A stretch of DNA of 64,000 nucleotides, taken from assembly GCA_048013815.1 (NCBI GenBank), contig CM106586.1, positions 3,844,001-3,908,000 on the forward strand, given 5' to 3'. The notes beneath the pieces are model-generated. The model did not search any database. It saw only the letters and a list, made by a program, of their open reading frames with translations, and was not told the origin of the DNA. Of the stretch, positions 171 through 29,300 are shown piece after piece (within the stretch, counting starts at the first letter, position 1; every line of letters begins with the position of its first letter). The position numbers and the translations under genes are program-made. Source of the DNA: Setoptus koraiensis (taxonomy: Eukaryota; Animalia; Arthropoda).

Positions 171-1027
171 ATGAGTAAAAATCAACAAGAAACAACAGAC
201 TTGGAAGTTATTGGTTGCGGCGATAAACGATGTGAGCCGGCATCAAAAGATTTGCAAGCCACATCAACAAATATTTCGACACAGTCAACGTCAGTGAGCG
301 AGACAATAATGCCATCGCAAGATAATGTGTCGTTGAATGCCGATGCCCCATCTAATAATGCAAACAACGAAGTTTCTTGTATTAATACCAAAAACAAAAA
401 CAATTCTTGTGCTCAAAGAAAGATCAATAATCATCAAAGCAAATCTAGTCAACAGGATCAAGCTCGTGGACAATCACAGGCTAAAGATTACAAACATACT
501 AATAACAGTGTGGCTCGCGGATATCGTGAAATAACCAGTATGCAACCAGAAGAAAACCAACGATTCAACGAACAGTATTCAATGGCCAGTAGTGGCAGCT
601 TAAACAATAGTGCTGCCAGCTCTATTGAGGCAACAAACATGAATTCTTATCCAATTTGTAGTGTAGATAATTGTAACAATGATGATTTAATGCTGGGATA
701 TAGCGACAGTTATATTATAAAAAATAGAAATAGAAGAAATAGAAATAGTAGTATTATTAGAGACATTAGTAATAATAGTAGACAATTAGTATACAGAAAT
801 AATAGTAACAACAACATAACAATCAATAGCGATGAGACACAATCAATCACTACTGCAACAACAGCTTCAAATTCTACCCTCAACAATAGAAGAGATCAAA
901 TGATGAACGACTCTCAACGTCAACTTGACCCTAATAATCCATACCCATTATATGCTCCAATAACATTCTGTTGTTTAGATCAAGTGTCTAAACCTCGCAG
1001 TTGGTGCCTGGCCATCGTCTCTAATAA
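171..1027 (+). CDS. Ca-alpha1T: Cav3 exon 1 (N-terminal cytoplasmic region)
   Basis: First in-frame ATG is at 171, downstream of an in-frame TAG at 114. It ends in the Cav3 motif [30 protein letters not shown] and is followed by ATATCCT. An upstream non-coding exon cannot be excluded. Confidence 0.85.
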
Positions 1028-4000
1028 ATATCCTGCCTATTCAACACACAAACAACAGATTTCTATTTCCGAATCCCACTCACACAAAATCCATGAGAGA
1101 TCCATAACGGGCTAACAAGTAGCGACGACTACGAGGAACCGAGTAAGATATACAAATTAGCAGCTTATATCCGGCATGTACAAATTTGCAGTGGCAAACA
1201 TTCGTATCTCGTATTTCGTATGTCACATCTCGTACCGCATAAAAGTTTTACCTTTTTGTGATTGGTGCGTTTAGAGTTGATATACTTTTCGCCAATTACC
1301 TTTATCTGACAAACGAATGAAAGCACGCGATCGTTATCTTAGTGTGCCTGTCCGCGAGATGGATATCGATTCATCTTTTGTTATCTCTGCATGATTGGTG
1401 CATGTTGAACATACAAAAGTAAGAGTTAGCGGTGAGAATATCTTGTTATAAGTGTGTGTCTTTTTGACCATTGCGATCACAGGTCGCACCCGTTGGGGCC
1501 CCGTCGCTGCCGGGCCGGTCCGGTCCGATTTGGTTTTGCTCGGGCGCGAGTCGCCAGTTTACTGGCTGTGAAACGAATGAGCCAGCTCACTGAAGCTGTT
1601 GATCTTCTGATTGGCTCGCTGTGATTGGCTCGCTGTGATTGGCTCGCCTAGCAACGCCAGTGTTAACGCCAGGGGCCCATTGTACAGTGTTGCCAAATTT
1701 GAAATCGCAGTCACATAGTGCATGTGTATTTGTGTATTTGTGTTGCTCATCACAAATACACATGACGCCACACATAACTGTCGCCGACACGTGATTGCAA
1801 GTCCAACAATGTTGCAGACAAGATACAACGGAGCGCCTCGATGACACACATGATTGTTTGATTTGTTGATTGTGGCTGGCATTTGAAGCAGAAATTATTT
1901 GATTAGCTAGTCGGGAGTCAACTGGCTAACAGCCGACGTGCCACTGTGAAAAGGAGCGTAAAATTAGCACGAAAATGGGGCCCAACTTTTGCAGCCCAGT
2001 TACAAAGTAACGGCTTTGTTGCCGCTGTTGTTGGGCACTGAAACAATGGGTTCGAGCATAACGAGGAGAGCGCATTTCGTCGGATCGGGATCAGTTGTGT
2101 GGCAGGGCGTTTGTAGCGGAGCCCCAATCAATTCAGGCAGGCCATGTTTGCCATTGGTTATGGTCGGGAGCTGTGTCTGGGGCCCGCTCGCCGGCTGGCA
2201 ATGCTTCGTGGGCCGCCGGCGAGCTGTGTGCGCACCTACGGCGGCTCAACTTTAAGTTATTTTTTGACACTCTTGTTAAAAGTGTCACGGTGTGTTCGCG
2301 ATGTCAAAATTGACAACTCACTAACACTGGCTGCGCCAGCCCGTGCCGTTGCAAGTGGCAAGTTGCGAGTTGTGTAAGTTTGCGCGACATTCGGCTACGC
2401 GGCAGCCTCGCCAGCGAACAAGGTGGCTTAAAAAATGTAGTTGTCGGTGGCAAGCGACAAGCGTGTTGGTATCATATACACAAACACCCATTGTGTGTAT
2501 ACTTGTGTTTAGCATAACCAATGAAGCATCAACAAATTGTTGTCGTTGTTGTTGTTGCTGGAATGTTGCGATTGGAGCGGGGCGCAATGTCAGCCATCTA
2601 ACAGGCGGGCCCCATCGCCTGTTAGACGCCTGCCAGATAAGTTGGCTGGCGGGGATAAAAAGCGCGCGCGCGCTCGAGAGACATAAAAAGGCGAACACAA
2701 ACGAGTGCAAATTGCAAACAAGTGGGTACGTTACGTAACAACTCGCCTCCATCGTGTGACATCGTATGTCCGTTACGCAGTACGGCTGTACTCGTGTCAT
2801 CTCGTTGCGTCGTTGCTTTGCTCGTGCCGGCCGACAGTGTCCTTGTCGTGCATGTTGTCGGTGTGCCGGTGTATGTGACACCCCGCGCTGGTGCCCATGT
2901 CTTGCGTGGTCTCGATTGCGCCGTCAGTGGAATGGATTTTAGAATGGCTGTTATGGTTTAGTTGTCGTGGCTGTTTGTCGACGTGGCCAGAGTTGCGCAA
3001 CCATTTATTCACGAGCGGGGCCCCCGCACAACAAGCTCTCGTCAGTGAGCACCTTGCAGCGGGCAGCTTGTAATCACATGTTAATGCGAGTCGCTGGCCG
3101 AACTTGTTGTCGAGCGACTGGCCGCCACATGATGATGATGATTGCGTGGCGCCTCGCAACAGGATATACAGATTATGTGCGGCCGCTGTCCTGGGGCCCG
3201 GCTTTGAGGCCCGCCGGTGGGCAGCGGCCAGTGGGCAGCGGGCAGCGCGCTGGCGGTTGTTAGAGAGCAACAATAACAACAAAGCTGACACCATTGTTGA
3301 ACTTCAACGGAGCGTACATAACTCGTTTTATCCGCTCGCGCTCTCTTACATCATCTTGCTGCTCATGGCTCTTGCTGCTCGTGGCCATAATGCACACTGA
3401 CAACTGCTACTGGCGCTACTTCATAACGGCAAATGTCACCTAAATTTCAATACCTCAAGTGTGTTGGGCGCAACTGTCGCCTTGCGCTGCCAGCGCAAAT
3501 TATATCGCTGTTAGCTGCTGGCTGCCGGCCGCCGGCCGCGGCCCCAAACCGCGTAAATGAATCAAACCGCCACCGCTGCCCATTCTATTATTCTAGCGCT
3601 AGTATTATTCTAGCGCTAGGTAGTTTCATCATCATCATCATTGTTGTCGCCGTGGTCGCCGGACAAGCTGGCAGAGGCTCGCAGCGGGCCGGCACAAGCA
3701 GACTGCGCCCCCGAACTGACAGTGACGCCGACGCCGACACGCACTGACACACCGGCCAGGATAAACGCTGATGATGGCTGCGGCCCACGCCTCGAGCTTC
3801 CTGTTTCTGAGGGCTGCCGGCTCGCGCCCAGCCCGCGTGCGACTAGCGAAAGTGAGCCCCCCCCCCCCCGAAAACATGCGCATCAATCTGGGCAGGCGGA
3901 TTCGGGCAAGATGATGACGTTTTCTTGTGCTGTCGCTACGTCGTGCATCAGCCCTGTCGAGCTCGTTCCCCCGCATCGAGTGCCGCGCCGAGACGCTGCT

Positions 4001-5268
4001 CGTTGCGATGCGGCCAATCTGATAAGTGGGCCCGCCACGCTACGCGCCATGATGAGCGACCGACCACAAAAAACAAGCCAACGCTAATGATCGCCGCCTT
4101 ATCACTTCCTATCCGAGCCGCTGTCTGGCTGGCGCGCTGGCTGGCTGGCATGCACCGAGGGCCCCGAAGTGGCCTGGCGGTGCGCGGTGCATGGTGCAAA
4201 TTCGCTGAGTTGGGGCGCTCGCCGAGCGCAACCAATCAAACGCTTTTTGTGTGTTCGCAAATTAGTATGATCATCATGACACCAGGCTATCGATTAGGTG
4301 ACTAGCTCTGTATACAGCCCAGAGACAGAGACAGCGTATAAACAACAAGCTCGTGTGCGAACAAGTGAAAGTCACATCACTGTCGCTGCTTATTGTTTAA
4401 CAAACACACACACACACTCACGAGTAACGGTACATAGCGACGTTACGTAACGACAATAAACGCTTGTTGTTCAACGCTTCGGCTTGTCGTTGGCCTCAGC
4501 TTGTCGTTGGGCTCAACTCACATTGGCTACGCCAATCAATGTTCACCATCATCAGCGTTGCGTAACCACAGTCGCGGGCCCCATTCACTCTGCAACTGGG
4601 GCCCGAGTTGCGCGGGCAGCGGGGCCCCAGTGGCAGCGGCCCAGAGGAAGTTGTCGTGAGTCGCTTGTTATCTCTAATTAAAACAAATAAATCTAGATAT
4701 ATCTCCAACAGGCGCCACTGTGTGCGCGTGTATCTAGATAAGACTCAGCGCCACAAACTTATCTATCCAGATACACGCTGGCTGCAACTACGTACAATGT
4801 ATTTAAATTAAAGCGGCCGAGTAGCAGCAGCTTAAAACTGGCACTACAACTAAGTGCTTATCTCACTCAGCCAGCAGCACTATTATTAGAAATGGGCCAA
4901 TCATTGGCACTGGCACGCAGTTTAATAGTGGCACCAGTTTAGTTGGCTGGCTTGGCGTTATTTGGCAGCAAAATGGCTGGCCATTTTGCTGCTAACTAAC
5001 GCCACACAAAACAATGGGGCCAACAACTTGTTTTGGCGGCGGCGGCGGCGGCCCCATCAAGCCAGAGCGTGCACATTGATTGGCAATCTTACGCAATAAT
5101 AATAATAATAATAATAGCAACACAGCGACAATAATGACAGCCAAAGCCATGTCGACACGACGCTAATTGTTGTTGTATTTTGTGCCATGTTCTCTCTATC
5201 TCTTTAGCGGCGCCCCTCTGCCGCTTCGTCGTCGTTGTTGTTGCTGTTGTTGTTGTTGTCGTTGTTGC

Positions 5269-5307
<39 letters not shown>

Positions 5308-8300
5308 GGCGCCAGCGACATTAGCTAATATTTTATTTTTATTATTATATACGTATATCCGCCGTTGGTTGCAGCGACATTGCATGGCTTTTTACGTTGT
5401 GAGTGGCTGACATCGTTTGCAGGCCAAACGTTTTGTTGGCCAGGGAGCCCCATGGCAGCGCTGCTGGCGCTGTTAAACGGGTAAATCGGTTAACGGTAGA
5501 TAGGGCCATCAAAATTACATAAAGTATCCGGCTGGCGCTGGCCCGCCTCTTTGGCGCTGGCTGCTTGGCCTATTAATCTCGGCTGATACCGATACCGGTG
5601 CAATAGTGTGGAACGCGGGCCATTGTTGCGCGGACATTGTTGCGCGGACATTGTGCCGCCATGCATCGGGGCCGCCGGGCTCGCTGGCTCATCGGTCAAC
5701 CAACAATTTACTTAGGTTAGTTGTCTTGTGAGCGCGACAACTGTAACTGCTGGTTTTAGCCCATTTGCAACAACAAATGGGCCCCGCGCAATCGGATACA
5801 ACTGCGAACCGGGCGCCATAGTTTGGCCTGGCGAAATTGGCCCCAACAATGGCAGCACCGTCGGCACCGTTGGCCGCAGCTTGGCAAAATTGGCAAAATT
5901 GGGGGGCGCCAACTTAGTTGAACTTGTGCGGCTACGTGCAAATTATTGAACACACGCCATCGATAAGTACACATGCACACACAACGGTATAAAATGGCAT
6001 TATCTGGCCCTGTCCACAGACAGATAAATATGTATTCATTCACTTGCGTGACTGGCCAATGTCAGCACTACCGACTCTCAGTGGTGCCGTCGCAATGTCG
6101 CAACGCAACGGGGCCCCAACCGACACAACGGCGACCGACACAACGGCGACCGACACAACTGCGACAGACGTAACGGCGACAGATATAACGGCAACACGGT
6201 GAGCAGCAATCTGCACATTGGATCTATATGATGGCGATGATGCTGATGGTGATGATATAAAAGTTGCGGATTATGCACACAATGGAGCGGCGGTGATCGA
6301 TGCTACATCAAGTGTAACAAATTATGCCTCCCCTGCATGTTTATTGGTCGCTTGCCGTCTCATTCTCGCTGTCGTCGGTTGTTGCTGGTTGTCGTCGGCT
6401 GTTGCTGGTTGTCGGCGGTTGTTGTCGCTGGTCGTTGGTGTCGTCTGTGGCTTGTCTGCCGAGCAGTCGGCACGGTTAGTCAGTGCCAGACAGTCGGTCG
6501 ACAGTTGGCCAGTGGGGCCTGTTTAGCGGGCCGGACAAGGACAAGTGACGCGTGGGAGTAGGCGCACCGGCGCCAGCAACGCCAACTCTTTGCATCTTTG
6601 CAGATTGTATATTGTGAACCGGCGAAATATACACTCTGCAAACAGTGCGTGCGTGCGTGTGTGTGTGTGTGTGTGTGTGGGTGCCCCGGTCGTCACCTAT
6701 GTAATGTTGCTATTATCATGATAATGGCGCACGCCGAGATGACAAGCAGAGATAGCGTCGCATGAGAGCAACAAGAAGAAGCCCAATAATAACACCGTCA
6801 GACCGGGCTACCTGGAATGCGGCTTCCGAGTAGCAAGGTGAGCCTCGTTGGCCAGCCTTGTCGGCTGTGAACGGGGCCCCAGTTGTGAGTCGCTTGTGAC
6901 GCAGCTTGCCAGCGACGATGGCTCGCAATCACGCTCAATGACTAATGATTGGCCCAATGATTCAATTGGCTGCCGATGAGTGCTGATTGGCAGCTTGCGC
7001 ACCGGCGACACCAAATCAATAATTGATTATGCTGCACAAAATAACAAGTTACAGCGCAGTTTACTGTTTGGCGAGCCAAAAACGGGCGGCCAGCCCCATT
7101 CGCAAGTCGATATTCACAACTTGTGAATCACAAGTTGATATTCACGAGCGCCTCCATTAAATTGCAGCGGCAGCCGCAGCAACGGCAGTTGCGTTTACAA
7201 ATGATGCCAAGCCAATCTAATGATTGCTCGTTGCCTCTCGGACCGGACAGTGGGCGCCCGCGAACCCGCGAATCCGCAAACCCGCAAACCCGCGAACCCG
7301 CGAATCCGCAAACCCGCAAACCCGCGAACCCGCGAACCACCCGGCACACAAAGGCCACTGTGAGGCCCTTTGTGTCGCTGTTGGCGCGGTGCGGCGAGCC
7401 GTTTGGTGGGGCCGCTGTTGCGTCAGTAAGATCGACTGTTACAAATTGAAACGCCTCCGTGTGCGTCGGGGCCAATCATTTGTTGGGGTCAGTAAAATTG
7501 TGCGCTCGTAGGAGTGATTACCCCGGGTCCCGGCTGGCGGCAGCGCCGAGGCTCGCGGCCAAAATGGGCGCACGTGTATCGGTTGATGTGCGATACCGAT
7601 ACAGGTATGCATATGCCTGCGAATGTAAGGTATGCATGCGTTCACACTGTGCACCTCACAGGTAGCAAGCTTGATGGTTGAGCGCGAGCGAGCATCGCCA
7701 GATAACCTGGCACCGGAGCATTAAAAAGCGCAAGACCACAGAGGCAAGACGATTGTGCGTGTTCATCATTGTGTTATTATTTAAATTATCCAGAGCTCAT
7801 CATATAACGGGCTGCGAGAGCTACCATCAGCGCAATAGGGGCCCCTTGGCTGGCTGGCTGGCCGGCCGAGAATAAAATGAGACGAGACAAGATTTGATGC
7901 AATGAGATGGCTGCTCTCTGCTGCCGGTCGGTCTTGGTTTGGTTGGCAAGCCGGCGAGATAGGGTGATACGAGACGTAACGAGAACGAGAACAGGTGCGC
8001 CAAGTAGTAGTGCGTGGGGGCGCCCAACGCGACACTGGCTTCCATTATCAGTTTGTGAATAGACGACGGGCACAGAATAGAATAGGACAAGGTTGCGCCA
8101 TTGTGGCTCCATTATGACGTTGCGCCAGCTAAACGGATAATACACCATTTAATACGAGCGCCACCTTGCCTCGGCCGGTTCCCCCGGCTCGGCTAAGTGT
8201 GTGTGTGTGTGTGTCGCCATTTGAGCGTCGCCGACTCCTCGCAACGTCGTGCCAGCAACTTCTTTTGCTGACGGGCGGGCGGGCGTGCGCGCCAGCTAGC

Positions 8301-11300
8301 CGGCCATGCCTGGCTAGCTTGCCAGCGAGCGGGGCCCCCCGCCCACAGGCAAGCTCGTAAAGGGGCTCCAGCGGCCAAATATCCATGGTAATAGTGCTGT
8401 TATTTAACATTGTGCAACAACGGATGTTTGCCGTTGCAATTCTTATTTAAATTTGTTGTTGTCGCGCGCACTATTTTGCAGTTTCTAACACAACTCGGCG
8501 CCAAAAGTGAGCCAGCCCCCATTTCGGCTGGCACACTTTCCGACAGGCCGCCGTCAGCTGAGTTTTCAACACTGAAATTCGCAACACTGGCCATTCCGAC
8601 AGCCAGCATTCCGACGGTGTGAATGTGTACGCCCACGCCGTGTAACAGTTGAACGGTTTGTTGTTGTTGCAGTCGTTGCAGTCGGGGGCTCACCTTTTAT
8701 CGTGTATCATTGTGCACCAATCTGGGCTGTTTGCGACCCGACGTTTGTGCGCCAACTCTCACCAGCCTTGCCAGTGTCGGGCGGCCCGGCAAGCCGCCGT
8801 CTGACGCCCGTTCGCCCGCCAGGTGAGTGTGTGGCACCCGAACGGGGCGCCATTGGGCCGTGGCTAAAGAATTTGTGTCGCGGCCTCAAGAGTCGCTGGC
8901 ATAACACACCACAATGTCGCTGGAAAACGGCAACATACAGCCGACGGCTCAACATTTTCATGCCTCATGACGCATGAGCCATTTATATCGCGAGCGGCGC
9001 TTGCATTCCGGCGGCGCGTTACCATTGGGCCCCAGCGCTTGCCGCACACGCACGCCAGGCCCAAAGTGGCGGGCCCGACAGTCACCTGACGGCCGAATTG
9101 TCTTCTGTTTGCCGGCCTAACCAAGTAGAAGATATTAGCCGACAGCAGCTAATCTGTGTCTCTGGCGCCTCTGCCGGCTATTACTGGCAGCATTATTATT
9201 TTTATTATGGCTCGATTGTCGATTATTGTTTGGGTGCGCGCCGATTGCATCACCTGGCCACTGGGCCATTGTTTGGGCCGTTATCACTCGTGGGTTTGGC
9301 CCGCTGGCTGCGACAACGACACCGCCAACAACAACGACAACACCAACACAAACAGCGGTCACTCTAAAGCTTATGCAAATCGTTTGCCCGCTTCACCCGT
9401 TCGCGCCCGGCGCCCCGCGCCGCAATATGTCGATTTGTGCGATTTGCGCGGATCGGCGGGATTCATTGTTGTGCTTGGTTGCTGGCATCGCCATTGTTGC
9501 CACTTCTCTCTGGCATATCTCAAGTGATGCGTACACCAGCAGCCGATGCTGATGATCGGCCAGCTCTGCGCCATTTATCCCATGGCGGCGCCAGCTTAGC
9601 TTGTTGGGCCGAACACGAGACAGATTTTTATTTCGCTTCTCTGGCCATCGGATTGAATTTAGCGCAACAATAACAATATGCAGCTCATCGATACTGTACG
9701 GGACACCGCTAGCGCGAGATTTCGTTAGAGCGGAATTCAGTTGCAGCGGATTTCTGTTGCAGCGGAATTCTGTTGGTGCGGAATTCTGTTGGCGCGGAAT
9801 TCTGTTGGCGCGGAATTCTATTGGAGCGGAATTCTGCTGGAGAGGGATGGGGCGCGCATTAGCGGAGCGTAGCCAGTCACCGTCAGCTGTGGCCCGTAGC
9901 CCATGCAAAGCAGATTATACGCAACACAACAAGCATGATGGCTCGTTGGACAACAACAATCATTAACCACACACCACTTACGTAACACCAGCGTTACGCA
10001 ACAGCCAGCCAGCCAGCCAGACTCGATATTACAGCGCGCTGTCTGTCTGGCTGGCTAGACCGTAAAAAGCCGTGCAAAGCGGAAATAGGCTAAATGAAGC
10101 AGAGAATCATTAGTGGCAGTGGTGTGGCTCGCGAGCTAAGCAAGCTCGCATCATCTGTGCAGAGGGGGCATCATATATACGCGCAACTTTGATACAAATT
10201 TCATCTCTTTCTTGTTGTCGATCATTGCATGTTGCAAACAAATTCGCACAAGTACGCACAATCCGTTTTAATTTCCATTGGTGCCCTTTCTACTGCTGTC
10301 AATGTCTAGTTTGCACGCCATTGGCGCTCGCTCAGCTCGCGGCTGCCTCGAGTCGAGTCGCCCCGATCGCGCCACTCGTATGGGGCCGTTCGTATGGGGC
10401 CGTTCGGGTCGGCCCATTCGGATCGAGCGCCCAAACGACGGCGCCAACTGGCGCCGCTGGCACGGTTGACACAGCGGGCACAGTTCACAGTGTGAGCGAG
10501 CGTTCGTGTGACCGTTGGGGCCAGCGTTTGGGGCGTTCGGGGCATTTGGGCAGTTCGGGCGTTGGCGGCGTCCGGGCGTCCGGCGCGACAAGCCGCAGCG
10601 GCGGCAATGGTGTTGTTTATCGCACTTCATTGGCCCACTCATTGGCCCACCTGACGCAATAAGAATATTGTAGAGCGAGGATTAGCTGACCAATGGTTGC
10701 GGGCTCGCTCGCTTGGCGAGTTGCCACGCGACAAACAGCGCGCGCAAAACAACAGCTCGTTTCGGCTTGTTGTGTGGCTATCGTCTTGCCAATTGGAGCC
10801 CCTCACTGGGGGCCACTCTGTTTGTTTCAAAACCATTCAAGCGAACAACACAAATCGAATTAGCCCGAGCGAGGGGCGCGCCACTCAAGCGGCCCAACGA
10901 CGCCAAGCGACAAGCCAACTCGCTGGGCACTAATTCTGGCCAGCCAGTTGGCTCGCTGGCCGCTTACATCATGTAAGTAGCATGTGAGGCCCGCTTGCGG
11001 GCGCCAGTGAGACCCGCGTGTAGGTGTGTTTACCTCCATTCATCATTTATCATCCATGGATCTGCGGCCAGCGGTCAGCCTATAGGCCCGCTGGCCAGAG
11101 CCAACTGGCGCCACTAGCCGCTCGCTGCTCGCTGGTGGCGCTCGCAACCGGAAGGGGGAAGGCAGCTCTCTGTTTATTGTCTTACATGTTGCAATCAACT
11201 TAACGCTTGCGCGAGCCACTCTGTGCAAGCTAACTGTTCTTGATATACTGATTGTTGTCGGTGTTGTTGTCGCCGCTGTTGGGGTTGTTGGCGTTGTTGC

Positions 11301-14300
11301 TGGTGTGAGGCCGTTCTTTTGTTTCGCGGTTCCTGGCGCGTCGGGAGTCGCGCGTCGGGAGTCGGGCAAACTGTGTGTGTGTGTGTGTGTGTGCGTGTGC
11401 GGCCGCTAACTGGCGGCCAGCGGGCGCCGCTTGAGAGAATTCAACTGCTGCCGACCCAATTGAGTTGTTGCCTCTCATTCAATTTGCAATTTATAAGTTT
11501 GAGCAGGCCCCGGCGCGCGCACCGTTAAGACACACACACACAATAGCCTGCGTGGCCTCGCCACAATCTAGATGTGGCTGACCTTATTATGGGGCCCGTT
11601 TGCGAGCCCCACTTTGTGTGCGTGTGTGCGAGCTGGGGGCAGCCCCAAGTTGCGCAGCAGCTTATGTTTGGCCAGTTGGGGCCAGTCGGGGCCAGTCGGG
11701 GCCGGTCGGGGGTGGGCAGGCCAGTAATTATATGTATAATGTTGTTGCTGTTAGATAAATCATGATTGAACGTATCAACAACTCAATTTGAGGCCCGCCA
11801 GCGCGCCGTCGTTTGGATTCTGTGCGGGGCTCGCTCTGTTTATGTGCCCTCTGTTTACATGCCCTCTGCTCACCAGCCCCTGCGGCTTACATGCCCGCCC
11901 TGTGGGGCCCGATTGTTCGGCCCACACCCCGACGCTCAGCCGATGTTCGCCACGGTCGTTATAGCGTCGTTGTGTGCCAGACCAATACCGAGACCGCAAC
12001 CGATTGCCCGAGCGCCGGACTGGCTGTCGCGCTAGCAGCTTTGCGGCCAGCAAGCGGCCCCCATTGTTACACCATTACTCGGGTCCGTTAGTGGCCCCGG
12101 AAGCTGGGCCGCTGTTTGATGGGCACGGCTGTTTGACGCAACAACAGCAATAACGCACTGTCTTGCTACAATTGCCGCTGTTGCTGTTGTTGCGGTTCGT
12201 GGCACACGAGCAATAATGGTTTAGCGGACGCATTTTGCACCGTCATCACCTTGAAATAATAATTAGTGGAGTCCCCGTGTCAAAAAAGATAAGTTGGTCG
12301 GCCATTACAATGCAGTGGGGCGACATGCATGCCGGGCATATGCAAATAAACTTTGACGCAGCGACAATAGTGCGACTGGACCAACTGGACGAGCCAACGC
12401 AAACACAATCAATGCCGCTCGCGTTGCGACAATCGCAAAGCCACTCAATTGAGTTGGCCACTCGGTCAATGTGGGGCCCACATTGAGCGTGCTTAAGTGT
12501 TTTTATGTGTAGCTCCATGTGGCCGCAAATCCGGCAAATCGCGAGCTAGCTAGCCGGCCGGCCGGCCGGCACAGCGAAGCAACGCGACAGCCAGATAAAT
12601 TGTGCAAAACAAACGACAATCAAGTGCCAGTATACTTGTGTTTCAAATCAGTTACTACTTCAGCCATGTTGACAATTTGATAAAAATACACACTCAAATG
12701 AACTGACCACCGCGGAGAGCTTTCGTGCGACTTTGCGACAATTTATGTTTCGGTTTGTGTGTGTGTGTGTGTGTTTAGTTGGCGCGACAACAAGATATGC
12801 GACACTTTGCGACACCATTTGTAACTGTCTCGTTATTTGTAGCGAACGTGGCGGGGGCGATTTGTGGCGCGGCTAAACTGTGCCGCCCGGCTGACTGGCT
12901 GGCTGGCTGGCTGACTGGCAAAAACATCGCAGAGCAAACATTGGAGGGGCTTTCATGGTTGCTGTTGTTGTCGTTGTTTTGCTGTTTATTGTTACCACAA
13001 TGGATAGTGGACGTAACTCTTCTCTTGTCGCGCCACCCAATACAAATCTCGTCATCGCCACAACGGCAGCGCCAACGACAGCGACAGCACCAACAAGGGG
13101 GCATAAATGTGTGCTTGTGACACATATAACTAACAACTGATGAATTGAGCCAACGAGCAAACAAGCGCCCAAACAGATAGCTGACCAGCGAGCGGCCAGT
13201 GGCGGCCAGTTTGGCCAAACTAACCGCCACTGGCGACTTATTGTGCGTTAAAATCACCACCAGTAACACAGCTACACCGAACAACAACAACAAATCAAAA
13301 TAAACTATGAAACCATAAACGGACACACAAAAGATGGATTTCTCGCTAAGGGGCCCCACATAAAAGCGCCTGGGCCACGCCAAAGGTATTGCGCCAAAGG
13401 CTGGCGAATGTAGCGGGCCTGTAGGCTGCACGAGCCGCGACTCGTGTAACACGAGCACACGAGCCGTCACAAAGTGAAAAGTGTCCTAAATGCGATGGCT
13501 CGAACACAAACACAATCGCCCTATCGTCCACTATTGGCAATTTATTTTGGCCAGCATAATTTTGGCTGGTTAGCAGTTATTTAAGACCGAGCGAAATCAT
13601 TTAGTGACCAGGCCATTAAACAATGACGCCACAGCCGCATAAATAACGCCCTCTAGCATTATTAACTACTATTCGGGGCCCACTATTTACAGTTGGCCCC
13701 GGCAAGCGGCGCTGGTCAGTTCAGCTAACTGGTCGGACTGCTCAAGCTCTAATCATTAGCTTAACTCGCTCATTGAATAAATAGCGGTCAGCGGCATGGA
13801 GGAATGCGCCCAAAAATAGAGCCGCTTATGCTGTCTACCGGGCGGCTAGGATTGATGGTCTGTTTCGTTAAGCCACTGACTTACTTTGGTGCTTTGCACT
13901 CTACCCGTCTCTGTATCTCTGTCTACTAGACAGTGTCTAGGTGCAATGCATCGGGTGCAGATTGCAACATAAAACAACACTTACAAGGGTCAATCTCTGC
14001 TCGACGCCAACGCTAACGAATGCTCGTCGCGAGGGATCACAACCCCTCGTTAAGTAGCCCTTGATCTGGCGAGCCCGCCAGCGAGTGCCCAGTGACATGG
14101 GGCCGCACTGGGCCCCAAATCACACACATACAGACGAACGCTATGGCACACAAATACTATCACACTCTATACTCGCTGGCAATGTGAGCGAGGCAAACAT
14201 GGCACTATTGCATTTCATCCGGTGCAGGTTGCTGTGTATATTTACTTTCGGCAATCGGTTGCAAGCAAAACATATACTTTCACGGTGAGAGGGTGAAAGG

Positions 14301-17300
14301 GTGAAAGTTTCAGCTTGTGCCCATTATCGCGTTCGCCACAACGACAATTATCTCGCTGTTATGTGTCGCCGATGAACAGTTGAAACTTGGTAAAAATCAT
14401 AGGTCAGTGTGATCTCTATGCCAGTGATTGCTCGACTGCTAAAAATATTATTGGTTGCCTTTGATGACCACATTGCCCTGTGTACTAGTGTACTACTACT
14501 AGTTAAGAACGGTGCTTGGCACTGTTCGGCCCCATTTGAGCCAGCCGTATGATACTGGCAACCGCGATCGTGTCATTCAACTGTCACCTGTGGTCGGTGG
14601 CTATTGTTTTGCTGCTGATATTTGCATACTAACTTCACTGATGAGACCGTTCATCATGTGAATCGTTTCAATAATCACTACCTATGCATAGCTATCGATC
14701 GATACGTGCACAATGGCCAGCCGATTCTCAACTCGTGCCCAGTGAATATTGAACAGATAATATTGATCCGGTACTATCCACAGCATCTAGGCTGCGCTCG
14801 CCACAAACCCACTAAAAGTTGTTTGCGTAAGCCCACCAGTGGGACCTTTGCAACGGTTTGCAAAAGCAAAGCAAAGAATTCGCTCAACTCTGGCCAGCAC
14901 ACAGCAACCATGCCAGGTATGGTCTATCCAAAACATGATAATCTGTCAGAATGATCATGTCTATCAGTATGTTCGCGCTGACAAGTGGGCCAGAGCGTAT
15001 TGTCGTGTGGCCGCTGGGTAGCTTTTGTACCAGTGGCAGACAAGTAGTGGGAGTTGGGGTTTTATCCTCGCTCTATCAAGAATCTGCACACTCGCAATGC
15101 ACACAACAAAGCAAAACAAAACACTAGCAAATGTCAAAATCATGCACATATGTATATCCAATGCCATTATTGAAACTGTCAGTTTGCCATCAGACATACA
15201 TAAAAAATCACTTAAATGAACGCTCGATCATAGCTACAGGCCCTACAAAACAATGAGATTTCATACTCAAGAACCCAACACACAAGCCGCTGGATATATC
15301 AAGATAGCCGAGGCAGGATATGGCCAAATGGCTCGATTTGTATTAAACACAATCGATAGCGCATTTGTTTGTAGCTCTCGAATGAAAACTGCCACGAAAA
15401 CTAACAAGAGGTTTTCAACTTTCGCGTCCGTCTAGTCCATTTGCTTGCATAATTCACTGGAACGAGAGAAACAAAATCAAATGCAAACATATACAGTGTG
15501 GGTCTTCCCTTGGGTACGAGCCTGTCATCAGAATGGTGAATAATACTCGCTAATCCGCGCGTTATGCAAACTACAAATGCGAATTGCATTTATCCGCTTG
15601 TGAGCACACACATTTGTGGGCCCCTTTTGGCCTCGTTTGCGTCCCCCCGTTGGCCATATAGTATTTGCTTATACATGTGGTATGGCTTATGTAGCTGGCT
15701 AATACCGATGGCCAGTTGAATATGGTCATATTTTCATTTCAGCGGCCTGGGCGCTCCAGCAATCCAAAGTCGTCATTATCATTGGCGGCGTGCATATCGC
15801 TGCTGGCCAATGCAAGTATCGATGAGCCACCGAAATCTTGCAATTAAATTAGCTTAGTGACTTTACTATCATGCCACAACATGCACTGCATGGTGGATTG
15901 GTCACCCTGTCATTGTGGTGTACGTGTTATACGAGGCATGAAATTTGCCCTGACACCTGATTTATTTTTGCCTGACCAACTTTTATTCCTGTGTTCGTTT
16001 GGCCACTGGGCCCGGGAGCCCCCTGTTAAGGGGACGGCCTGTTAAGAGAGACGCTCAGCGACGGCTGGTCACTCAGAGATAATCAGTTTGTGATGGGCGT
16101 CTTTTTCATTCATTTTGCTACGAGGGATATAAGAGGTTTGCGAGGTTTTTGTCAGAGGGCAGAGGATGTTGCAAGCGACGCTCTGAGTCGGATAGACTAT
16201 CCGGCCAAGCAAATGGCGCCAAACAGGCGCTAGAAAGTAATCTGGCCTTAACTGTTCAGGAGGAGTTGTAAAATTTACGACTTTTTGAGTTTATACTGGA
16301 GCCTAAGCACGACAATATATTATATTGTTTTATCTTTCTTCGATCTGGCCATCCTATAATTTGTTGGGTGCGTGTGTCGCATTTTGCTAAATTCACGCAG
16401 ACACTCACAAGAATAAGTGATTGTTCTCCTGAGAGGACACAAAGAAACATATTCGAGGTCTCGTCTCTGATAGAATACTGAACAACGGATCCAGTCGGCA
16501 TCTAGACCGCGCCACGATGAACTTGCGCGCCGGTGTTGGCGGGCCCCAAAGTGGCTCTCATCACCGGCAGCCGCTGTATCGGTGTGTGTGTGTGTGTGAA
16601 ATTTTTGAATACCGTCAGTTGTAGCCGGCGAACGAGCTGGTGCCCAGAACTGGCGCCCGCAACTGGCTACCTCGGTGCAGCCGGCCTCTATCCAGCGAAT
16701 CTAGTTCAGGTTTTATTTTGGGTGAACTAGTTTAGTATTTGGTAATCATTGTGTGTCCTATACCAGGTGAATCGTGTTTAGTTGCGTGTGTATGTGTGTG
16801 TGTGTGATTTCGAGTGGATAGCCTCCGATGGCTGTCGTTGAGACTGACGTTTATGTGTGTGTGACTGTGTTTGCAACTAGTCGCCAGTTGGGCCAGATAG
16901 ACGAGATAGGCCGGTCTGAGAAACGTTGAGAGCTTTATAAGTAGCATTATCTAGAATGGCAAGTCGTTGCCGCGAGAGGAAGGCGGCATTAAATCATTTG
17001 ACATTTTCAACCTACTACCAGACGCGGTACCAGACGCCGCACCAGACGCGCCACCAGACGCAGCACCAGAAATGAGGGGGGAGCAAGACTCGGCAACTAG
17101 GAGACAGGCTGTTACAGTTGCGTTGATATCTGATTCGCACTTACCTCTCGCGCTCTCGCTCTCCCTCTATGTGATGAGTGGTGATTTAGAGTCCGCCAAT
17201 GTTCTTTTCGACGGTTTTGTTTTAACTGTTGTTCAACTCAACTAGCTGAAATTTCCAATTTGATTAATGCCTGCTTTATAAGTTTGCTCTCTTGTTTTCT

Positions 17301-20300
17301 GGCACTCACTTAGATAACACCACTAATGTTGTCGTGCGTTCGGTCTAACGAGCCAGCCAGCCTGCCAGACAACCAACCAATAGTAGCTGCGCTATGGCCA
17401 GATGTATTTCACCACTTACATGCCATGACAATATTGGGGGAGTGAGAGCTGGGGCCTCCTTCTCTCTCTCTCTCTCCCTTGCGCTCGCTCTCATCTCATC
17501 CGAAAACAACGGCACGTCTACCACAATAATAGCAGGTGTAAACAAAGCAAGCATCTTTCTTTTTCTGCCATACTATGCACGAGTTTGTATGCTGGGCACA
17601 CACGTACACTCAATCCTGTTTAGATCGGCAAGCAAGGAACAGCTTGCCAAGTTAAATGGTTGCTCCGGTAGTCGCCTGACTGAATAGCACGTGAAATAGC
17701 ACGTCTTCCACATTCACTCTTTGAATACAATCCATTAACTAATATGTTAGGTAACGGTTGACGGCACGGCACCAATTGGTTTTGATTGGTCCCAGGCTTG
17801 ATTGTCCTAGTTGTCTCCCACAAAACCTTCAATGAATTGGACATTCAATAGACATTTCTTCTGCCAGGTCCAGCATAAGCACATTGCCCACCATGGAGCG
17901 CCACTATGGCCTACTCAGCTAAAGCTCCAACATTGCGTGAGACCTAAATTGTGCATAATCAATTCCCAATTCCCCTTTCTGAACAGTGATTAAGGTTTTG
18001 CGTGGCTTGCAACATCCTAGCAAACAATGATTTGAATGGATTAGTCCTCTCAGAAGGGTACGTTATCGCTGCCACGTCTTCATCATACCAATATACATCG
18101 CAACATCTGATCGATAAAATTATGATTGCTGTAATGAACCAATGGCTCTGATCGAGCAGCATTCTTGATTCGGTTCTCGATAAATCAATTCTTATGAATT
18201 TCATCTACTTCCTGTCCGAATTTTCGCGTTCGAATGTTCAATTGGAGGAGTAAATCAATGAATGACGCGCTTGCTGGTCTATTCGATGCACGAAAAAATT
18301 CGAAGCAATTCCTAGAACAGCTTATCTTGTTATCTAGTTAAGACTCTATCTATAGTGCAGTGGGTAGTAGTAATTTGAATTTTCAGCATCATCCCAATAA
18401 TTATATTTACTTGTTATTCGCAAAGTTTCCAACTCCTCGCAGCTCGTACTGTTCTCGTGTACTGTTCTATAAAATAGTATTCAGATCAGCCTCAAAACAA
18501 GTCCACTTTCTCCCCGCTCTTGATTAGATTACAGCTATTGCAATGTAGCTCGACCCTCACACGTTCATGGACGAACCTACGTTGATAGATCTCATCTGAT
18601 CTAAACTAGAACAAGCACTACCTTATAAATGAAGATTAGCAATCTTGAGTGATGCCCACAGTCATGGCTTGCCGGCTTGCAAGACAGACAATTAAATTAC
18701 AATCAGTATTAATACAAGATCTGGAATGGTTCTAGCTAGATATTGTTATTTTGACAAATGTACAATTGCACAATTTGTTGTATAGATCAAGATCATACCA
18801 GATAGCTCTTTCCGCCATGAACTCAGAAAACTTGAGTGCCCCGAATTCATGCACTAAACCAATTAATTAAATTGCTCAGCAAGCATAAATTGCATATAGT
18901 TGCTGGTTGAACTGACCTAGATATGCCTAATTGATGCAACTGATGCATCTAATTGAGCAAGTCAGACGTTCTCTTACTGACAAGTTTCGAGGCAGCCAAT
19001 CTTCGAATAGTAATAACAATGGTGAGGCAACACACACATGGTTGTCACCATGTGTGTTCGTCTTCTATAGTGACATCGATGTCGTGAAGAGTTGAATACG
19101 TCGAAGACTGTATAATCTACGTATGCTCTTTTTTCCCAGTTCGTGACACTTGAATCTGATGTCCAATCAGCATGATATGAGGCAGCATTCGTTGATTATC
19201 TAATTCGACTGATATGCCAATATTCTTCGAATTAGTCCAAATCAGTGAGATGCCATCTTGGTTAATCATCGCCATTTATAGTCATAACGCTGGGTTGTAG
19301 CGATGCTTGCCAAATATTTACCTTTTTCGTGCGACTTTAGAGCTGTTACCCATCGTGGCCGAACGGCATCTACTAAAGTTGGCTTAAAGATCATGTCTAG
19401 TTATGAAATGAAATATCGCTCCACCATTTAAGATAACATCATTGTGTGAAAGCAAAGCAACCATATGATTTGGAAAACAAATGCAGATCTCTTTATCTTA
19501 AACAATATACCAGCAGCATATTGTGCCACCTATTCCATATGTAAGTTTCCTACGAAATTCTCTCTTGCTTGTGATAATCATTAAGTCTGGTCTTGTTGTT
19601 TGGATTCTTTATTAACGTCCACCCTGGTCTCATAATAGGAAATTTCGTCGACCCATTGCCGGCACGATATTTAGCTAAATCACAAAAGCTAATCTCAATC
19701 TGCTATCTCTCACTTAAGAAGATGAACCGAACTTGCTTTAGCTTTGAGCCTGGAGGCTAAAATCAATCTAATTCTAAATGGAGCAAAACCATTGTTCGTT
19801 CTTTGTTGTTATGTCGCCAATGTTGTCCAAGATGACAACCATCATTGCCGCCGAAGCCATTATTTTATGACAAAGACAATCTTGATCATTCTTCATTGTT
19901 GAACTACCCTTCCTGCCAAGTCGAGAAATTCATGATAGAGTGAGAGTAACTCAGTGTAGGCTACCCCTCTATTTATAATGGATGTCTCCATGAAATTCCA
20001 TCTATTCTAGTGCTCCATCGAATAACTTTGTTGAGTTACTTAAAGTTTCAGAGCTAACAGTCATCTAACTCTCTACAATCTGGACCATTTCTTGTACTAG
20101 CTTAAGCGTTATAGAAGACACGCGTCGAAAGTTATTATATGTCCCAGTTTCCAGCAAATATCTAGTAACATCTTCCTCAGTTAGTGTCCAACGTGTCCGA
20201 AGAGCTAACATGATTACCATTGTGGTATCCACTGAGCTAGTGAAAATTTAGTTTGGTTAGTGAGTGGTCAGATTACAAGAGAACTAGATCTACTAGATTT

Positions 20301-23300
20301 GATTGATGACATTTCAATCGCTAGTTATCATATCCGTGATGTCAGACTATTGAATTATTTCAGAACTACGCCACTACACATGTAATATCTGTTAATGTTG
20401 TTTCAGCATCTCTTAGTTGGTAGTAATTTGAATTGTATGTTTCATTGGTGCTGATCCAATCGTATGCAGACTATGAGAACATTCGTTCTGGCGTGATTAG
20501 TTTCGATATTCTGAAGATGCTCCCTGCTGATCTATCTTATGTTCGGCTCGAATGGCAATGGTATGGGAGAGGGTTCATTTTTTTCCGCTAACACATTCGA
20601 ATTGGGATGAGCATAAGCTGAACTGATTTAGCTTAGTGACGAACGTTTAAACGTACAGTCTAAAGTATAATCTCTTGTTTGTGATACAGACAAATAATTG
20701 AATTTAATCCTTATCTGCACAAAGCTTCTATCTATAGTCAATATGATGGACGATATGGCGAGCCCCTAGGCTTGATTTATGAATACGATGTATTATCTGT
20801 CGCAAAAGAGTATCAACCTAGAATGTTTTAAAATGCTAGTTACAGGACGAATTTAGCCCGCGCACCAATCCTGTAACAACTATTTAGAAACATCCAGAAA
20901 AACTATGCATGGTAAAACAATCTCTTCAGTAACAACAGATGATTTATCATGTAATACTTATCAACTGGATTTAAATGCTCATTGTAAACATTATTTTGGG
21001 CCGCTTTGGTGAGCCGTTAGTTTGTTCATATGTTACAAAACATTAATCGAGCTACATTTACTGGCATTTATGATCATTATGTGCACGTGCATCATTCTAT
21101 TGTTATTCATTGATCTCTGGATATTTCCTGATATTGTTTTGAGGTACGAAATTGTCGCGAGATCCGCTTTGACTGACAGACGAGCGTCTGGCTGGCTTAT
21201 CTATTTGATGCCGCGGGCCTCTTACAATGTTAGCCTTTGCGGACTTTTCTTGACAAGCAGCAACTTTTTTTTTGCCGAGCTTGGTAGCTGCACCACTGCA
21301 TTGCATGCCTGCTATTTATGATATGCATAATAGATGGTCTTTAGGACAAATTGATATATGTCTTATCTCCTTTGTTGGCCCATTAGAAATGTTAGCACTA
21401 GTTGCCATTGGACATGCTAGGGCACTACCATGTGAAATACTGTTTCTAGCGGGCATTGTATGGGAGAAAAGTAAATAAGATACAATATAATATTCAGTTA
21501 TGGTGAATTATGATTCATGATAGACGTTGCCAGATATTAAACAGTGAGGAAATAAATCAATATTGGTTCGCTCTGTGATTTGTCTACCCAATTAGTATTG
21601 TGTGTATTGCATGACGAGATGCGCGTTTTATCCAGCGGCGACCGTTGCAATCGATCAGCGATGTCGATCGCCGGAATCGATGTCAACCATTCCAACTCTT
21701 GTCCCTATTGACTGCGCCACCGATTTGTGGTGGCTGTTTCCCCCAGCGCCCACCTTACAGTGTGTCTGCGTAACGTGCCTACTCAATGGCACGATCCGGG
21801 GGACAGAACTTTACTGCGTGCGCGACACTGCTTGAATAATTTAATGTCATTTGTAAATATAAGCTGCAATTTGTTATCTACAATAATTCGTGTGCTGCGT
21901 ACACTCATGTTGTGCAGTGCGCGCACTTGTATTAGCGTATCCCCCCCCCCTGTGTTACGCCAATATAAACTCGCTCGCCCATCATTGATATCTCTTGACC
22001 TTGCCCCCCTCCCTTGCCCCTTCCCTTGCCCCTTACCCATTTGCCCGTTCACCCTTTGCCCATCCGTCAATATGAAAACGTTGTCATATCAAAAATGTTT
22101 GAGGCGACCATTGCCCAAATTATTTTCCTTGACCTTCTCTTCTATTTTCAATATTCTTCTCGCCCGATGTATCAATTATCTTAATTACTATTGCTTGCGA
22201 CCAACACGTGGTTTGAGCGAATCTCAATGATTGCCATCTTAATTAATTGCATCACATTAGGATTGTATCAACCTTGTGCTGACGACTATTGCATATCCAA
22301 CAGGTAAGCGCAATCAAGTCTATTCAACGATGATGCCAGTCATTCATCTATTAATTGACCATTAATCAAACTACATTCGTATCCATTGAAAATGACCCAT
22401 CTCAAACCACCAAAAGGTGTCAACTGCTAAAGTCCTTCGACCACGTGATATTCATATTCTTTCTAATGGAAATGCTCGTAAAAATGATAGCTATGGGCAT
22501 ATCCAACGCTCCACAAGCCTACCTGGCCGATTATTGGAACAGATTGGACTTTTTTATTGTGATAGCCGGCGGACTAGAGTATACACTTGACATCGGAAAT
22601 GTTAATTTATCTGCCATTAGAACTGTTAGAGTTTTACGACCATTGAGAGCCATCAATAGGATTCCAAGTGAGTCCCAAGACACCAAATTTCATCCACACT
22701 CTTCATTCTTTTTGCACTGGTACTTTCTATTTAAAACTCAACTTCCATTTCGTCTCTTTATAGGTATGAGGATACTGGTTACCCTCTTATTAGACACGCT
22801 ACCCATGTTAGGCAATGTTCTTTTACTGTGTTTTTTTGTCTTTTTCATCTTCGGTGAGCATCAACTATACAATCCTATAATCATCCTTCAAAAAAAAAAC
22901 TCTTAAAGATAGATTAGGTTAAACATAACTATATTTAATCACAGGTATTATTGGAGTCCAACTTTGGTCGGGTCTTCTAAGGCAACGGTGCTTCATCAAG
23001 CTTCCCTTCAACATGACCAAGCCAAGCTATGTGCCAGCCTACTATCATCTACCTAACAGTGATAAAGAATACCTATGTAGTACTGCCAAAGATAATGGTC
23101 TTCATCGGTGCCAGGATTTAGCGCCTTTGCGCTCAAGTGATACCAACACCTTCTGCCAAATACCTCTACCCCAAGACTGGAGACCATCTCAGAAACCTTC
23201 CAAAATCAAAGAGCCAATCTATAGTGATTACTACGGAGAGAAACCTCCACCTTATGATCTAGTTCCTGGGGATGAAGGGAGTCCATTCTTAGTGTCTCAA

Positions 23301-26300: not shown

Positions 26301-29300
26301 ATACGCTCAAGAGATACCTCAAAGAGACAGTCAGCGAGCGTTTCAAGAAACAGTGAAATCAGACGTAAGAGTCTACACGATCTGGATGATATTGAAATTG
26401 TCTTTTGGCCAAAAATTTTGACCGGCAACCATTCAATCAATCAATGCTGCGGGAAGAGCATAGAATCTATCAGGCTACTAGTTGATCACAGATATTTTCA
26501 GCGCCTTATTCTGTTAGCCATTTTGATCAACACCATTTCTATGGGTATCGAGTATCACAATCAACCTGAACAGCTTACGGAGACTGTAGAAATAAGTAAT
26601 ATTGTATTTGCGTGCCTTTTCTTGATAGAAATGGTCCTCAAATTATTGGCTCATGGGTTCTATGATTACATCATTGATGGTTTCAATTGTTTCGATGGTT
26701 GCATCGTTCTTCTTAGCGTGCTTGAATTATTTGAAACCTCTGGCTCCGGTCTGTCCGTACTAAGAACATTTAGACTTTTGAGGATCTTGAAACTTGTGCG
26801 TTTTATGCCCGCACTCAAGAGGCAATTAATCATCATGTTGAGAACGATTGACAATGTTGCGGTTTTCTTTGCACTTTTAGTATTATTTATATTCATATTT
26901 AGTATATTGGGTATGAACTTGTTCGGCTGTAAATTCTGTGATCAACTCCCTGATGGCACAACACGATGCGACAGGAAAAATTTCGACTCACTACTATGGA
27001 GTTTAGTAACTGTTTTTCAAATACTCACTCAGGAGGATTGGAATGTATGTATACAATGTCCTATTTGCTTCAATGCCCAATAATCAGATTGATATTCTTC
27101 AATAATTTAATGATCACTGTACTCATATCTGCAGGTTGTATTGTTCAATGGAATGGAGAAAACATCGCATTGGGCTGCACTATATTTTGTTGTCCTTATG
27201 ACATTTGGTAACTATGTGCTATTCAACCTATTGGTAGCTATATTGGTGGAGGGGTTCTCACAAGAGGTATTTATAAGATCCTATAAGCCTGACAACCACA
27301 TTAAAATAGATTACTCACTCTAACACGATTTACTATTGATGCTACTGCCACTTTGATTGTTTTACCCAAACAACGATATGAATATATTCATTTAGGACGA
27401 TCTGAAAGTTTCCTCGAGTTCCAACTACACTCTAAAAGATCAAAGCAACCAGAGCCAAACAGGAAAACAGACACAACAAAAGCGTAACCTGAAGAATGAT
27501 CCTTCAAACAATAGTATCATGCAAGCTATTTCCGGGAGAAAGATGATTGATCCTGAAACAAAATCAGTAATCTCAGACAATTATATCAATGATAAAGTTG
27601 GAAATAAGATATTATTGCCAAAATCTTCGTTAAATGGCAGGGATAACAAGCGCATTCTTCACAGTGTTACTTCTCGCGATGAGACTACCATTGAACAACC
27701 TATGCTGAGGAAGGCTGGTGGTCACACAAGAGCAACGAAACAAGCTAGTTATGGATCAAAGTCATCTAGCCAAATCCGATCAGTTTCTGTTGATCTGGAT
27801 ATGGTCATTGATACTGATAACCAAGCGAACAAATACCTCGATTACTATCAACGGAATATCGAACTCACCCAGAACAACGACAACAGAGGTGAAATCAAGG
27901 GCGAAACAGGAGGTGCTTCAAATACCATGAATTGTTCCATCACTGGTGGAAATAATCCAGCTCAGAAGCGCTTGATATATTTCTACGATAGCAGGGATAA
28001 TATTGAAGAAGGTTAGTCTCACTATAATATATATATTTTATTGATAAAATTACCGTGTTGAGTTGTTCACCGTTTAAGAGTCTTTTCCCTCTCTCTTTCC
28101 ACCAATCTTATAACAGAAATCGAATTTCTAGTAAAATCACTTCAGTCTAACTCATATACGGCCTCTGCTGAGTTGAGGCAACAAAATAGTAAGGGTTGCT
28201 TACAGAACGCTCTCGGCCTGCAAGATTCAACGCGAAATACACCGTTTGCCGTTGCTGCCGTCATTGGTCTACCAATGCCCAATCATGAATTCCAGATGAA
28301 ATCAGATATCTATGTTGATAGAAGATATCATCCTCCAACGATTGTTGCACGTCCGGCGGAAACGTACAGAGGGAAGTGCTCATCCATACCAGATGCAAAG
28401 TCGTGTTTAGATGAAAAGAATGACCATCAACGAAGGTTGTCTGAAAATATTGATAAAAATTTTTTGCTATGTGATCAACCTAAAGATAAATCACGAGTGG
28501 ATTACAACTTCAAAGTTCAGTCTCAATGGTCATCGACACCATGCATCTTAACTGAGTCCAGTATAAACGCTATGCGACTTCATCATGCCTATAAAAATCA
28601 CTATCCTCGCCAATCGGGTCAGCTTAAGTTACTCAAAGGTAAGTTGAAAATAACTATAGTCCATCGACATAGACCAAACATGTAAGTTCGTACGAAAGCT
28701 GACGTTTCATTTGGTCGCTTAAAACATCAAATCACTATAGGTTTTACACGATTTGATGAATCGTGTTCTAGGGTAGATGATCACGGCTATCGTCGAACGC
28801 TCGCGAACTTCCTAGGACATTCTTGTTTAGGTGGATGCCAAGGAAATGGTTCAAGTAGATGTGGACTTTGTCTCCTCTACAAGCCAATCTGCAGGTTCCA
28901 ATTCGGAAAAGCATCATCTCAATCACCCTATTCGTTTACTCTCCCGGATCAGGCAGTGCATCAGCTCAACAATCATGGTAAAAAAAATCATCGATTGCAG
29001 GAAGTTATCAAATCAAACGAAAAGTTCTTGCAAGCGATGTCGAGGCGAGAGGAAAGAGTAAAGAGGGCAAAAATTGCGGCAACTATCAATAACTCGTATG
29101 ACTTTCTTCCAACAAGTAGAGCATTGGCCATAAGACGAGGATCCAGTGCTGTGCTTTCAAGATTGCGCCTCATTCGTCCATCAATTGAATCTATTCTCCC
29201 CACACCCATATCAATGACAGATTCCAGTCGTAACTTCTCCAATACATCACCTCTAAACAAACCGATACTTATGACATCTAGCGTGAGTCGATCGGAAAAT

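Follow-up and report, generated by a model that had tools for sequence, protein, structure and literature searches.

A putative U12-type AT-AC first intron of 21 kb in the T-type calcium channel gene of the mite Setoptus koraiensis

What separates the first two coding exons of the T-type (Cav3) calcium channel gene of the mite Setoptus koraiensis, and which splicing machinery would take it out? The gene opens a 64,000-nucleotide (nt) stretch of forward-strand DNA (the window: GenBank assembly GCA_048013815.1, contig CM106586.1, positions 3,844,001 to 3,908,000; coordinates below count from its first base). An earlier note on the window took the interval between these exons for a single AT-AC intron. 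On the evidence assembled here, 1028-22207 is very probably the first intron of an acariform mite Cav3 gene and, more specifically, the ancestral U12-type AT-AC intron that lies between the N-terminus and segment S1 of domain I (D1S1) in voltage-gated sodium (Nav) and calcium (Cav) channel genes. The features from which the argument starts are these:

171..1027, plus strand: Cav3 coding exon 1, with start codon, low-complexity N-terminus and conserved motif, ending 2 bases into a codon (translation; PDB alignment with Cav3.1, Cav3.2 and Cav3.3; homologous open reading frames).
1028..22207, plus strand: intron 1, 21,180 nt, AT-AC, predicted U12-type; the only junction keeping Trp-Phe-Glu (WFE), with position and phase shared with Oppia, Orussus and the related contig L008 (see below).
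1028..1036, plus strand: predicted U12-type 5' splice site ATATCCTGC, 7 of 9 positions agreeing with the ATATCCTTT consensus (PMC6259924).
22206..22207, plus strand: 3' splice site, terminal AC (sequence and acceptor enumeration).
22208..22303, plus strand: exon 2, where domain I segment S1 begins (translation; PDB alignment).

Direct reading of the DNA defines the ends of the intron. It opens with ATATCCTG at 1028-1035 and closes with AC at 22206-22207; ATATCCTGC, at 1028-1036, has the /ATATCCTT(T) form of a U12-type donor, and the terminal AC is what that class of intron carries at its 3' end. The ATG at 171 starts the exon-1 open reading frame (ORF), and the AA at 1026-1027 is a partial codon, so that the intron that follows is in phase 2. 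When 1027 is joined to 22208 the split codon AA|G encodes Lys and the frame is restored: the bases after the AC, G TGG TTT GAG CGA ATC TCA ATG, read (K)WFERISM. In sequence searches of the PDB, exon 1 finishes its last full codon on Asn80 of human Cav3.1 (6kzo), and exon 2 has its first one on Trp82. The registers with Cav3.2 and Cav3.3 are equivalent, and the alignment neither loses nor gains a residue at the junction. Since only one residue lies between N80 and W82, no coding exon is missing between exons 1 and 2. The alternatives were enumerated by pairing every GT, GC or AT donor in 1000-1115 with every AG or AC acceptor in 22100-22240. No GT-AG or GC-AG pair in this set keeps WFE (all of the in-frame ones delete it), there is no AG dinucleotide between 22104 and 22216, and AT(1028)-AC(22207) is the sole pair to give the junction of the orthologues. 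The junction proposed in the earlier note, its in-frame restoration of WFE and its statement that unspliced read-through stops at 1113-1115 are thus all borne out, the last by reading the exon-1 ORF onward. As a separate observation, three AC dinucleotides crowd the acceptor, with their last bases at 22201, 22205 and 22207; the one at 22200-22201 is also in frame, adding two residues, and might serve as an alternative 3' splice site.

The gene has the four domains of its family and a pore of the T-type (E-E-D-D: LEGW, QEDW, KDGW and GDNW, read from the translation). Its best database matches are all T-type alpha-1G, 1H or 1I channels. The identity reaches 77% in domain II, which is 76-77% identical to the Cav3 of Oppia nitens and of ticks, and tblastn with the Oppia protein covers all domains of the gene. 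In channels of this kind the site between the N-terminus and IS1 is known as a rare U12-type AT-AC intron position, occupied in Nav1, Nav2, Cav1, Cav2 and Cav3 and not in NALCN (PMC6259924; PMC3634016; PMC10120453). The statement of the earlier note that channel genes carry ancient U12 introns in domain I therefore has the support of the literature (PMC6259924, PMC3634016), and it has that of the position and phase of the intron in orthologues as well.

These orthologues come partly from NCBI gene models and partly from contigs of relatives in Logan, ENA and JGI, which derive from soil and plant metagenomes. A protein search with exon 1 finds closest relatives with up to 79% identity over its conserved end. 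Ten homologous exon-1 read-through ORFs all end in ...PRSWCL(A/K)IVSNKYP and then diverge. The shared SNKYP ending arises because AA|ATAYCCN, the U12 donor, is read through. At the DNA level the donor is AA|ATATCCT in L001 and L003-L005 and AA|ATACCCT in L002 and L008. The second form, at 10761-10767 of L002 and 5682-5688 of L008, belongs to a single relative that two independent metagenome assemblies contain, and it alters the normally invariant +4 position of the donor. L003 has no exon 2 within 8.3 kb downstream of its donor, making its intron longer than that. L008, a contig labelled plant metagenome, holds both exons, and the AT-AC intron between them (5682-13063) has 7,382 nt and 61.5% GC. 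The NCBI model of Oppia nitens Cav3 reads CC|ATATCCTTT ... TCCTTAAC(27 nt)AC|A TGG TTT GAG over an intron of ~36 kb, and that of the sawfly Orussus abietinus CC|ATATCCTTT ... TTCCTTAAC(11 nt)AC|G TGG over ~4.5 kb. In the window, in Oppia, in Orussus and in L008 alike the intron is in phase 2, one codon before the Trp, which is the ancestral D1S1 position and phase; this is the comparison with Cav3 orthologues that the earlier note had proposed as a check. The 23 bases of exon 2 starting at the Trp codon (22209-22231) are also identical between the window and Oppia nitens (L006, 41334-41356), against a protein identity of ~76% elsewhere. Exonic splicing signals or codon bias may account for this. 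Three of the relatives further share what lies ahead of exon 1, an ELO fatty-acid elongase gene and, on the opposite strand, a sugar/MFS transporter gene, each a single ORF. This pair lies upstream of the point that corresponds to the start of the window:

L001, 4297-7240: ELO and sugar/MFS pair.
L002, 4969-8173: ELO and sugar/MFS pair.
L003, 3032-6969: ELO and sugar/MFS pair.

Within the intron, sequence is retained in relatives only close to the two ends. The window and L008 align in three stretches: the end of exon 1 with ~27 bases of intron, 22090-22133, and 22195 onward (the last 13 bases of the intron, exon 2 and beyond). The corresponding features are:

1037..1055, plus strand: donor-adjacent block, partly conserved among mites (blastn alignments reach 1053-1055; multiple alignment).
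22090..22133, plus strand: conserved 3' intronic block ending in a perfect U12 branch motif (87% identity to L008 in a 46-column alignment).
22125-22133, plus strand: perfect U12 branch-site motif TTCCTTGAC (motif search and L008 alignment).
22134..22205, plus strand: pyrimidine-rich (69%) spacer from the branch motif to the 3' splice site (composition).
22177-22185, plus strand: weak second branch-like site TATCTTAAT, 6 of 9 positions, 23 nt from the intron end (motif scan).

Immediately beyond the ATATCCT donor, some 20 intron bases show partial conservation between the window, L001, L003 and L008, in a pattern like YYCYATTYAACAC, and this conservation exceeds what pairing with U11 and U6atac needs. 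TTCCTTGAC is the sole perfect match to the U12 branch consensus on both strands of the 64 kb, and it lies on the correct strand within the last 83 nt of the intron. The number of such motifs is, by itself, at chance level (1 TTCCTTRAC with 0.94 expected, and 7 RTATCCTK with 6.8 expected). What is beyond chance is their placement, exactly at the two breakpoints of homology, on the correct strand, and conserved while the interior of the intron diverges.

The argument for the machinery follows from these motifs. That the ATAYCC donor and the perfect branch motif are conserved in relatives argues that a minor spliceosome still works in this lineage. Its presence is inferred from the purifying selection that this conservation implies, and from a published precedent in mites. 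The precedent is the eriophyoid mite Aculops lycopersici, in which 83.7% of genes are intronless and a single U12 intron is left (Greenhalgh et al. 2020, PMC7738191): an AT-AC intron of 12.5 kb, intron one of a conserved calcium-channel gene, with splicing supported by RNA sequencing, and orthologous to a U12 intron of Tetranychus urticae, which has three (PMC7738191). Splicing of intron 1 in the window, and its removal by the minor spliceosome, are predicted from sequence, with support by analogy from the RNA sequencing of A. lycopersici. Pre-mRNA would be transcribed through all 21 kb; the U11/U12 di-snRNP (a pair of small nuclear ribonucleoproteins) would bind the AUAUCCU donor and a UUCCUUGAC-type branch site; U4atac/U6atac.U5 would join next, and the exons would be ligated at AA|G.

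Several observations weigh against this account. One is the distance from branch motif to 3' splice site. U12 introns typically have their branch site ~10-20 nt from the 3' splice site. The spacing between motif and AC in the orthologues is as follows:

Orussus (insect): 11 nt.
Oppia nitens: 27 nt.
L008 relative: 41 nt.
This window: 74 nt.

The branch A of the perfect motif thus stands 75 nt from the end of the intron, and the 74-nt spacer is far beyond the typical U12 distance; the candidate at a better distance, TATCTTAAT at 23 nt, is a weak one (6 of 9 positions). That minor introns have a defined constraint on this distance is documented (PMC11347168). The Acari as a group, moreover, have very few minor introns, and in some mites the loss is complete (PMC10639083). 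Finally, Rfam finds no family over threshold anywhere in the 64 kb, hence no gene for a small nuclear RNA within the window. With regard to the spacer itself, it contains no AC or AG until 22188. Folding of the RNA was considered as a means of shortening it and rejected, the z-scores in the window (-0.45 and -0.79) not being significant. Nor is there significant or conserved pairing of the block next to the donor with the one at the branch site.

The canonical 11-nt spacer of the insect orthologue and the AUACCCU donor tolerated in one relative lead us to offer, tentatively and as something less than an even bet, another way of looking at this distance. In these intron-poor mites the minor spliceosome may serve just one or a few introns. 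In that case intron and machinery may jointly have departed from the canonical rules, with the conserved perfect UUCCUUGAC, 41-74 nt upstream of the AC, as the functional branch site. The growth of the distance from branch site to 3' splice site, from the insect to the oribatid mite and on to these mites, is possibly the new element in this material, and if the proposal holds, the intron amounts to a natural experiment in 3' splice-site choice by the U12 spliceosome.

Why the intron is so long is a separate question. The earlier note suggested that a long, slowly spliced U12 intron is kept as a rate limiter of Cav3 expression. There is wide discussion of U12 introns as regulators that are spliced slowly (PMC4615840), and inhibition of minor introns reduces sodium and calcium channel expression in cardiomyocytes (PMC8767276); the intron is also long, and retained, in several intron-poor mites. 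We nevertheless think this explanation unlikely. The length of the intron varies five-fold in relatives (from 7.4 to 36 kb) and its interior is not conserved, which speaks against tuning of the length and against extensive conserved regulatory sequence. The lengths of the orthologues (7.4, >8.3, 12.5 and 36 kb) would fit neutral retention of a 5' intron, or cis-regulatory content, equally well, and a pan-eukaryotic survey favours largely neutral dynamics of minor introns (PMC10639083). The five-fold spread and the unshared interior agree more readily with a 5' intron that has been retained than with an element tuned in length. Most simply, then, the large size would be that of a retained long 5' intron: such introns resist the 3'-biased, complementary DNA (cDNA)-mediated route of intron loss, and they may carry regulatory DNA.

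What fills the intron bears on whether it is a single simple intron at all. Its most distinctive part is the following:

1500..13500, no strand: GC-rich (50-59%) non-coding core, CpG not depleted, many short tandem duplications (composition, Pfam, Rfam and codon-position tests).

The exons have 36-42% GC and the small introns 26-37%, as against the 50-59% of the core, where CpG is at expectation. Outside the core GC is ~40%, with shifts of composition near 1.5 kb and between ~13 and 18 kb. The L008 intron, at 61.5% GC, stands ~10 points above the genes upstream of it (48-53%); high GC is therefore common to the two introns, though their interiors have no sequence in common. Nothing in the intron resembles the rest of the window, and it contains no repeat of any size, its self-matches being three short ones (two inverted, one direct) besides micro-tandem repeats; an origin of the interior from a transposon or other repeat was rejected on these grounds. 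Coding content was rejected too: the excess of open frames over mononucleotide shuffles mostly vanishes with dinucleotide shuffles, there is no codon-position bias, and the ORFs overlap on both strands.

The 21 kb could still hide non-coding or alternative first exons or a nested gene, or be removed stepwise. The length is unusual in this genome, several RTATCC sites lie on the plus strand inside the intron, and stop-free stretches of at least 100 codons are marginally in excess (42, compared with 33.5 +/- 4.4 in dinucleotide shuffles, p ~0.03). All of the internal RTATCC sites, on the other hand, lack the full RTATCCT motif; none of the 10 longest intron ORFs matches a Pfam family, and to this are added the empty Rfam search, the overlap of ORFs on both strands and the absence of a GC bias by codon position. 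Protein homology leaves no space for added coding residues, and in comparison with L008 only the donor-adjacent and branch-site blocks are conserved inside the intron. We regard any such composite arrangement as very unlikely.

More improbable again, in our estimate, is that minor splicing has been lost and the AT-AC intron is removed by the major (U2-type) spliceosome. There is some reason to consider it, since some AT-AC introns of sodium-channel genes are known to be of the U2 type, and the scarcity of minor introns in the Acari and their complete loss in some mites (PMC10639083) would be in keeping with it, as would the resemblance of the long 69% pyrimidine spacer to a U2-type polypyrimidine tract and the deviant ATACCCT donor of the L008 species. 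An AT-AC intron of the U2 type has, however, a donor that is GTRAGT-like save for the A at +1, in effect AT-AAGT-like, and no U12 branch motif (PMC1557818). The donor here is ATATCCT and the branch motif is a perfect U12 one, and both contradict that class. The motif is moreover conserved in the 46-nt block, the ATAYCC form of the donor is kept in all of the relatives seen, and the orthologous mite intron is treated as U12 in print (PMC7738191). That the length is an artefact of assembly, with foreign or mis-joined GC-rich DNA between true neighbours, we consider barely credible: the core does depart from its surroundings (50-59% GC in place of ~40%, with shifts near 1.5 kb and ~13-18 kb), but independent assemblies also have a long intron (7.4 kb in L008, >8.3 kb in L003, ~36 kb in Oppia and 12.5 kb in A. 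lycopersici), that of L008 is also GC-rich (61.5%, against 48-53% in its upstream genes), and the interior has neither prokaryote-like ORFs nor, in its 10 longest ORFs, Pfam matches.

The remainder of the gene is compact. The nine exons assemble to 3358 amino acids with one terminal stop, and the seven other introns are all GT-AG and of 90-129 nt, the size that the earlier note had given them:

22304-22416: intron 2, 113 nt, GT-AG.
22668-22763: intron 3, 96 nt, GT-AG.
22854-22944: intron 4, 91 nt, GT-AG.
27045-27134: intron 5, 90 nt, GT-AG.
27267-27395: intron 6, 129 nt, GT-AG.
28012-28116: intron 7, 105 nt, GT-AG.
28639-28740: intron 8, 102 nt, GT-AG.
22417..32153, plus strand: Cav3 exons 3-9, with six of the seven small GT-AG introns between them; E-E-D-D pore (gene model).

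Domains III and IV do lie uninterrupted in the last exon (28741-32153), as the earlier note had it. Its description of the gene as otherwise stripped of introns does not hold, seven small GT-AG introns being retained besides intron 1. As to the five neighbouring genes that it called intronless, two stand up as single ORFs, AP-3 beta (812 amino acids) and Piwi (857 amino acids); the rest are short and perhaps incomplete ORFs. The Cav3 model is very long, with a large low-complexity N-terminus and I-II linker and only ~60 residues past IVS6, and it is possible that it misses a C-terminal exon.

The neighbourhood offers a few further observations. The AP-3 beta protein is ~50% identical to those of oribatid, trombidiform and astigmatid mites, and 93% identical to that on one Logan contig; exact look-ups of the AP-3 beta and Piwi proteins in the public assemblies index give no record. 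Together with the domain II identities, these figures place the window in an acariform mite, perhaps of a deep-branching lineage living on plants or in soil, such as the Eriophyoidea. An ORF of 259 amino acids with only a Sec8/exocyst N-terminal domain (32204-32983, minus strand) converges on the Cav3 stop at a distance of 50 nt; it may be truncated or continue through an intron. The segment 35000-36000 is extremely AT-rich (21% GC), with ORFs overlapping in several frames and no Pfam match. The gag ORF of a copia-type long terminal repeat retrotransposon lies at 58104-58778 (minus strand), with many short minus-strand ORFs around it and a GC-rich patch nearby at 60-62 kb; the 54-62 kb region is probably a decayed retroelement.

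The practical consequence of intron 1 is for annotation. Gene predictors that allow only GT-AG introns would lose the first 285 codons of Cav3 or split the gene, and a correct model needs the 1027/22208 junction. More generally, where lineages have shed nearly all of their minor introns, the D1S1 intron of channel genes is one of the last to remain; the present one adds a data point, and the intron could be used as a quick marker of whether mite genomes have kept the minor spliceosome.

The pattern itself is already in print, as a D1S1 U12 intron in Cav3 (PMC6259924) and as a long AT-AC intron 1 in a streamlined mite (PMC7738191), and what is described here is its occurrence in another species. 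A general comparison is with the D1S1 introns of animal Nav1 and Nav2 and of Cav1, Cav2 and Cav3, which lie at the same place, where the disordered N-terminus gives way to IS1, and which are AT-AC introns with a U12-type donor and a TTCCTTRAC motif. The phase here is that of the two annotated arthropod Cav3 orthologues, from Oppia and Orussus. What sets the window apart is the 74 nt between its perfect branch motif and the 3' splice site (Orussus has 11 nt, Oppia 27 nt), together with a split codon that specifies Lys in place of the usual Pro. In Drosophila, the T-type gene Ca-alpha1T (CG15589) retains an AT-AC U12 intron, among the 19 U12 introns of the fly (Lin et al. 2010, PMC2831892), and so provides another instance of a T-type gene keeping such an intron in a lineage in which most minor introns have been lost; it is an insect gene, and the likeness drawn here is in the presence of the intron. 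A close counterpart is intron 1 of aculy03g00270, a calcium-channel gene of A. lycopersici. This, too, is a long U12-type AT-AC intron in first position, from an acariform mite with mostly intronless genes, and in that species it is the sole evidence that a minor spliceosome has been retained. It is shorter (12.5 kb, compared with 21.2 kb here), and four introns are listed for its gene, compared with eight. The publication speaks of aculy03g00270 as a calcium-channel gene, and its strict orthology with the Cav3 gene of the window is presumed.

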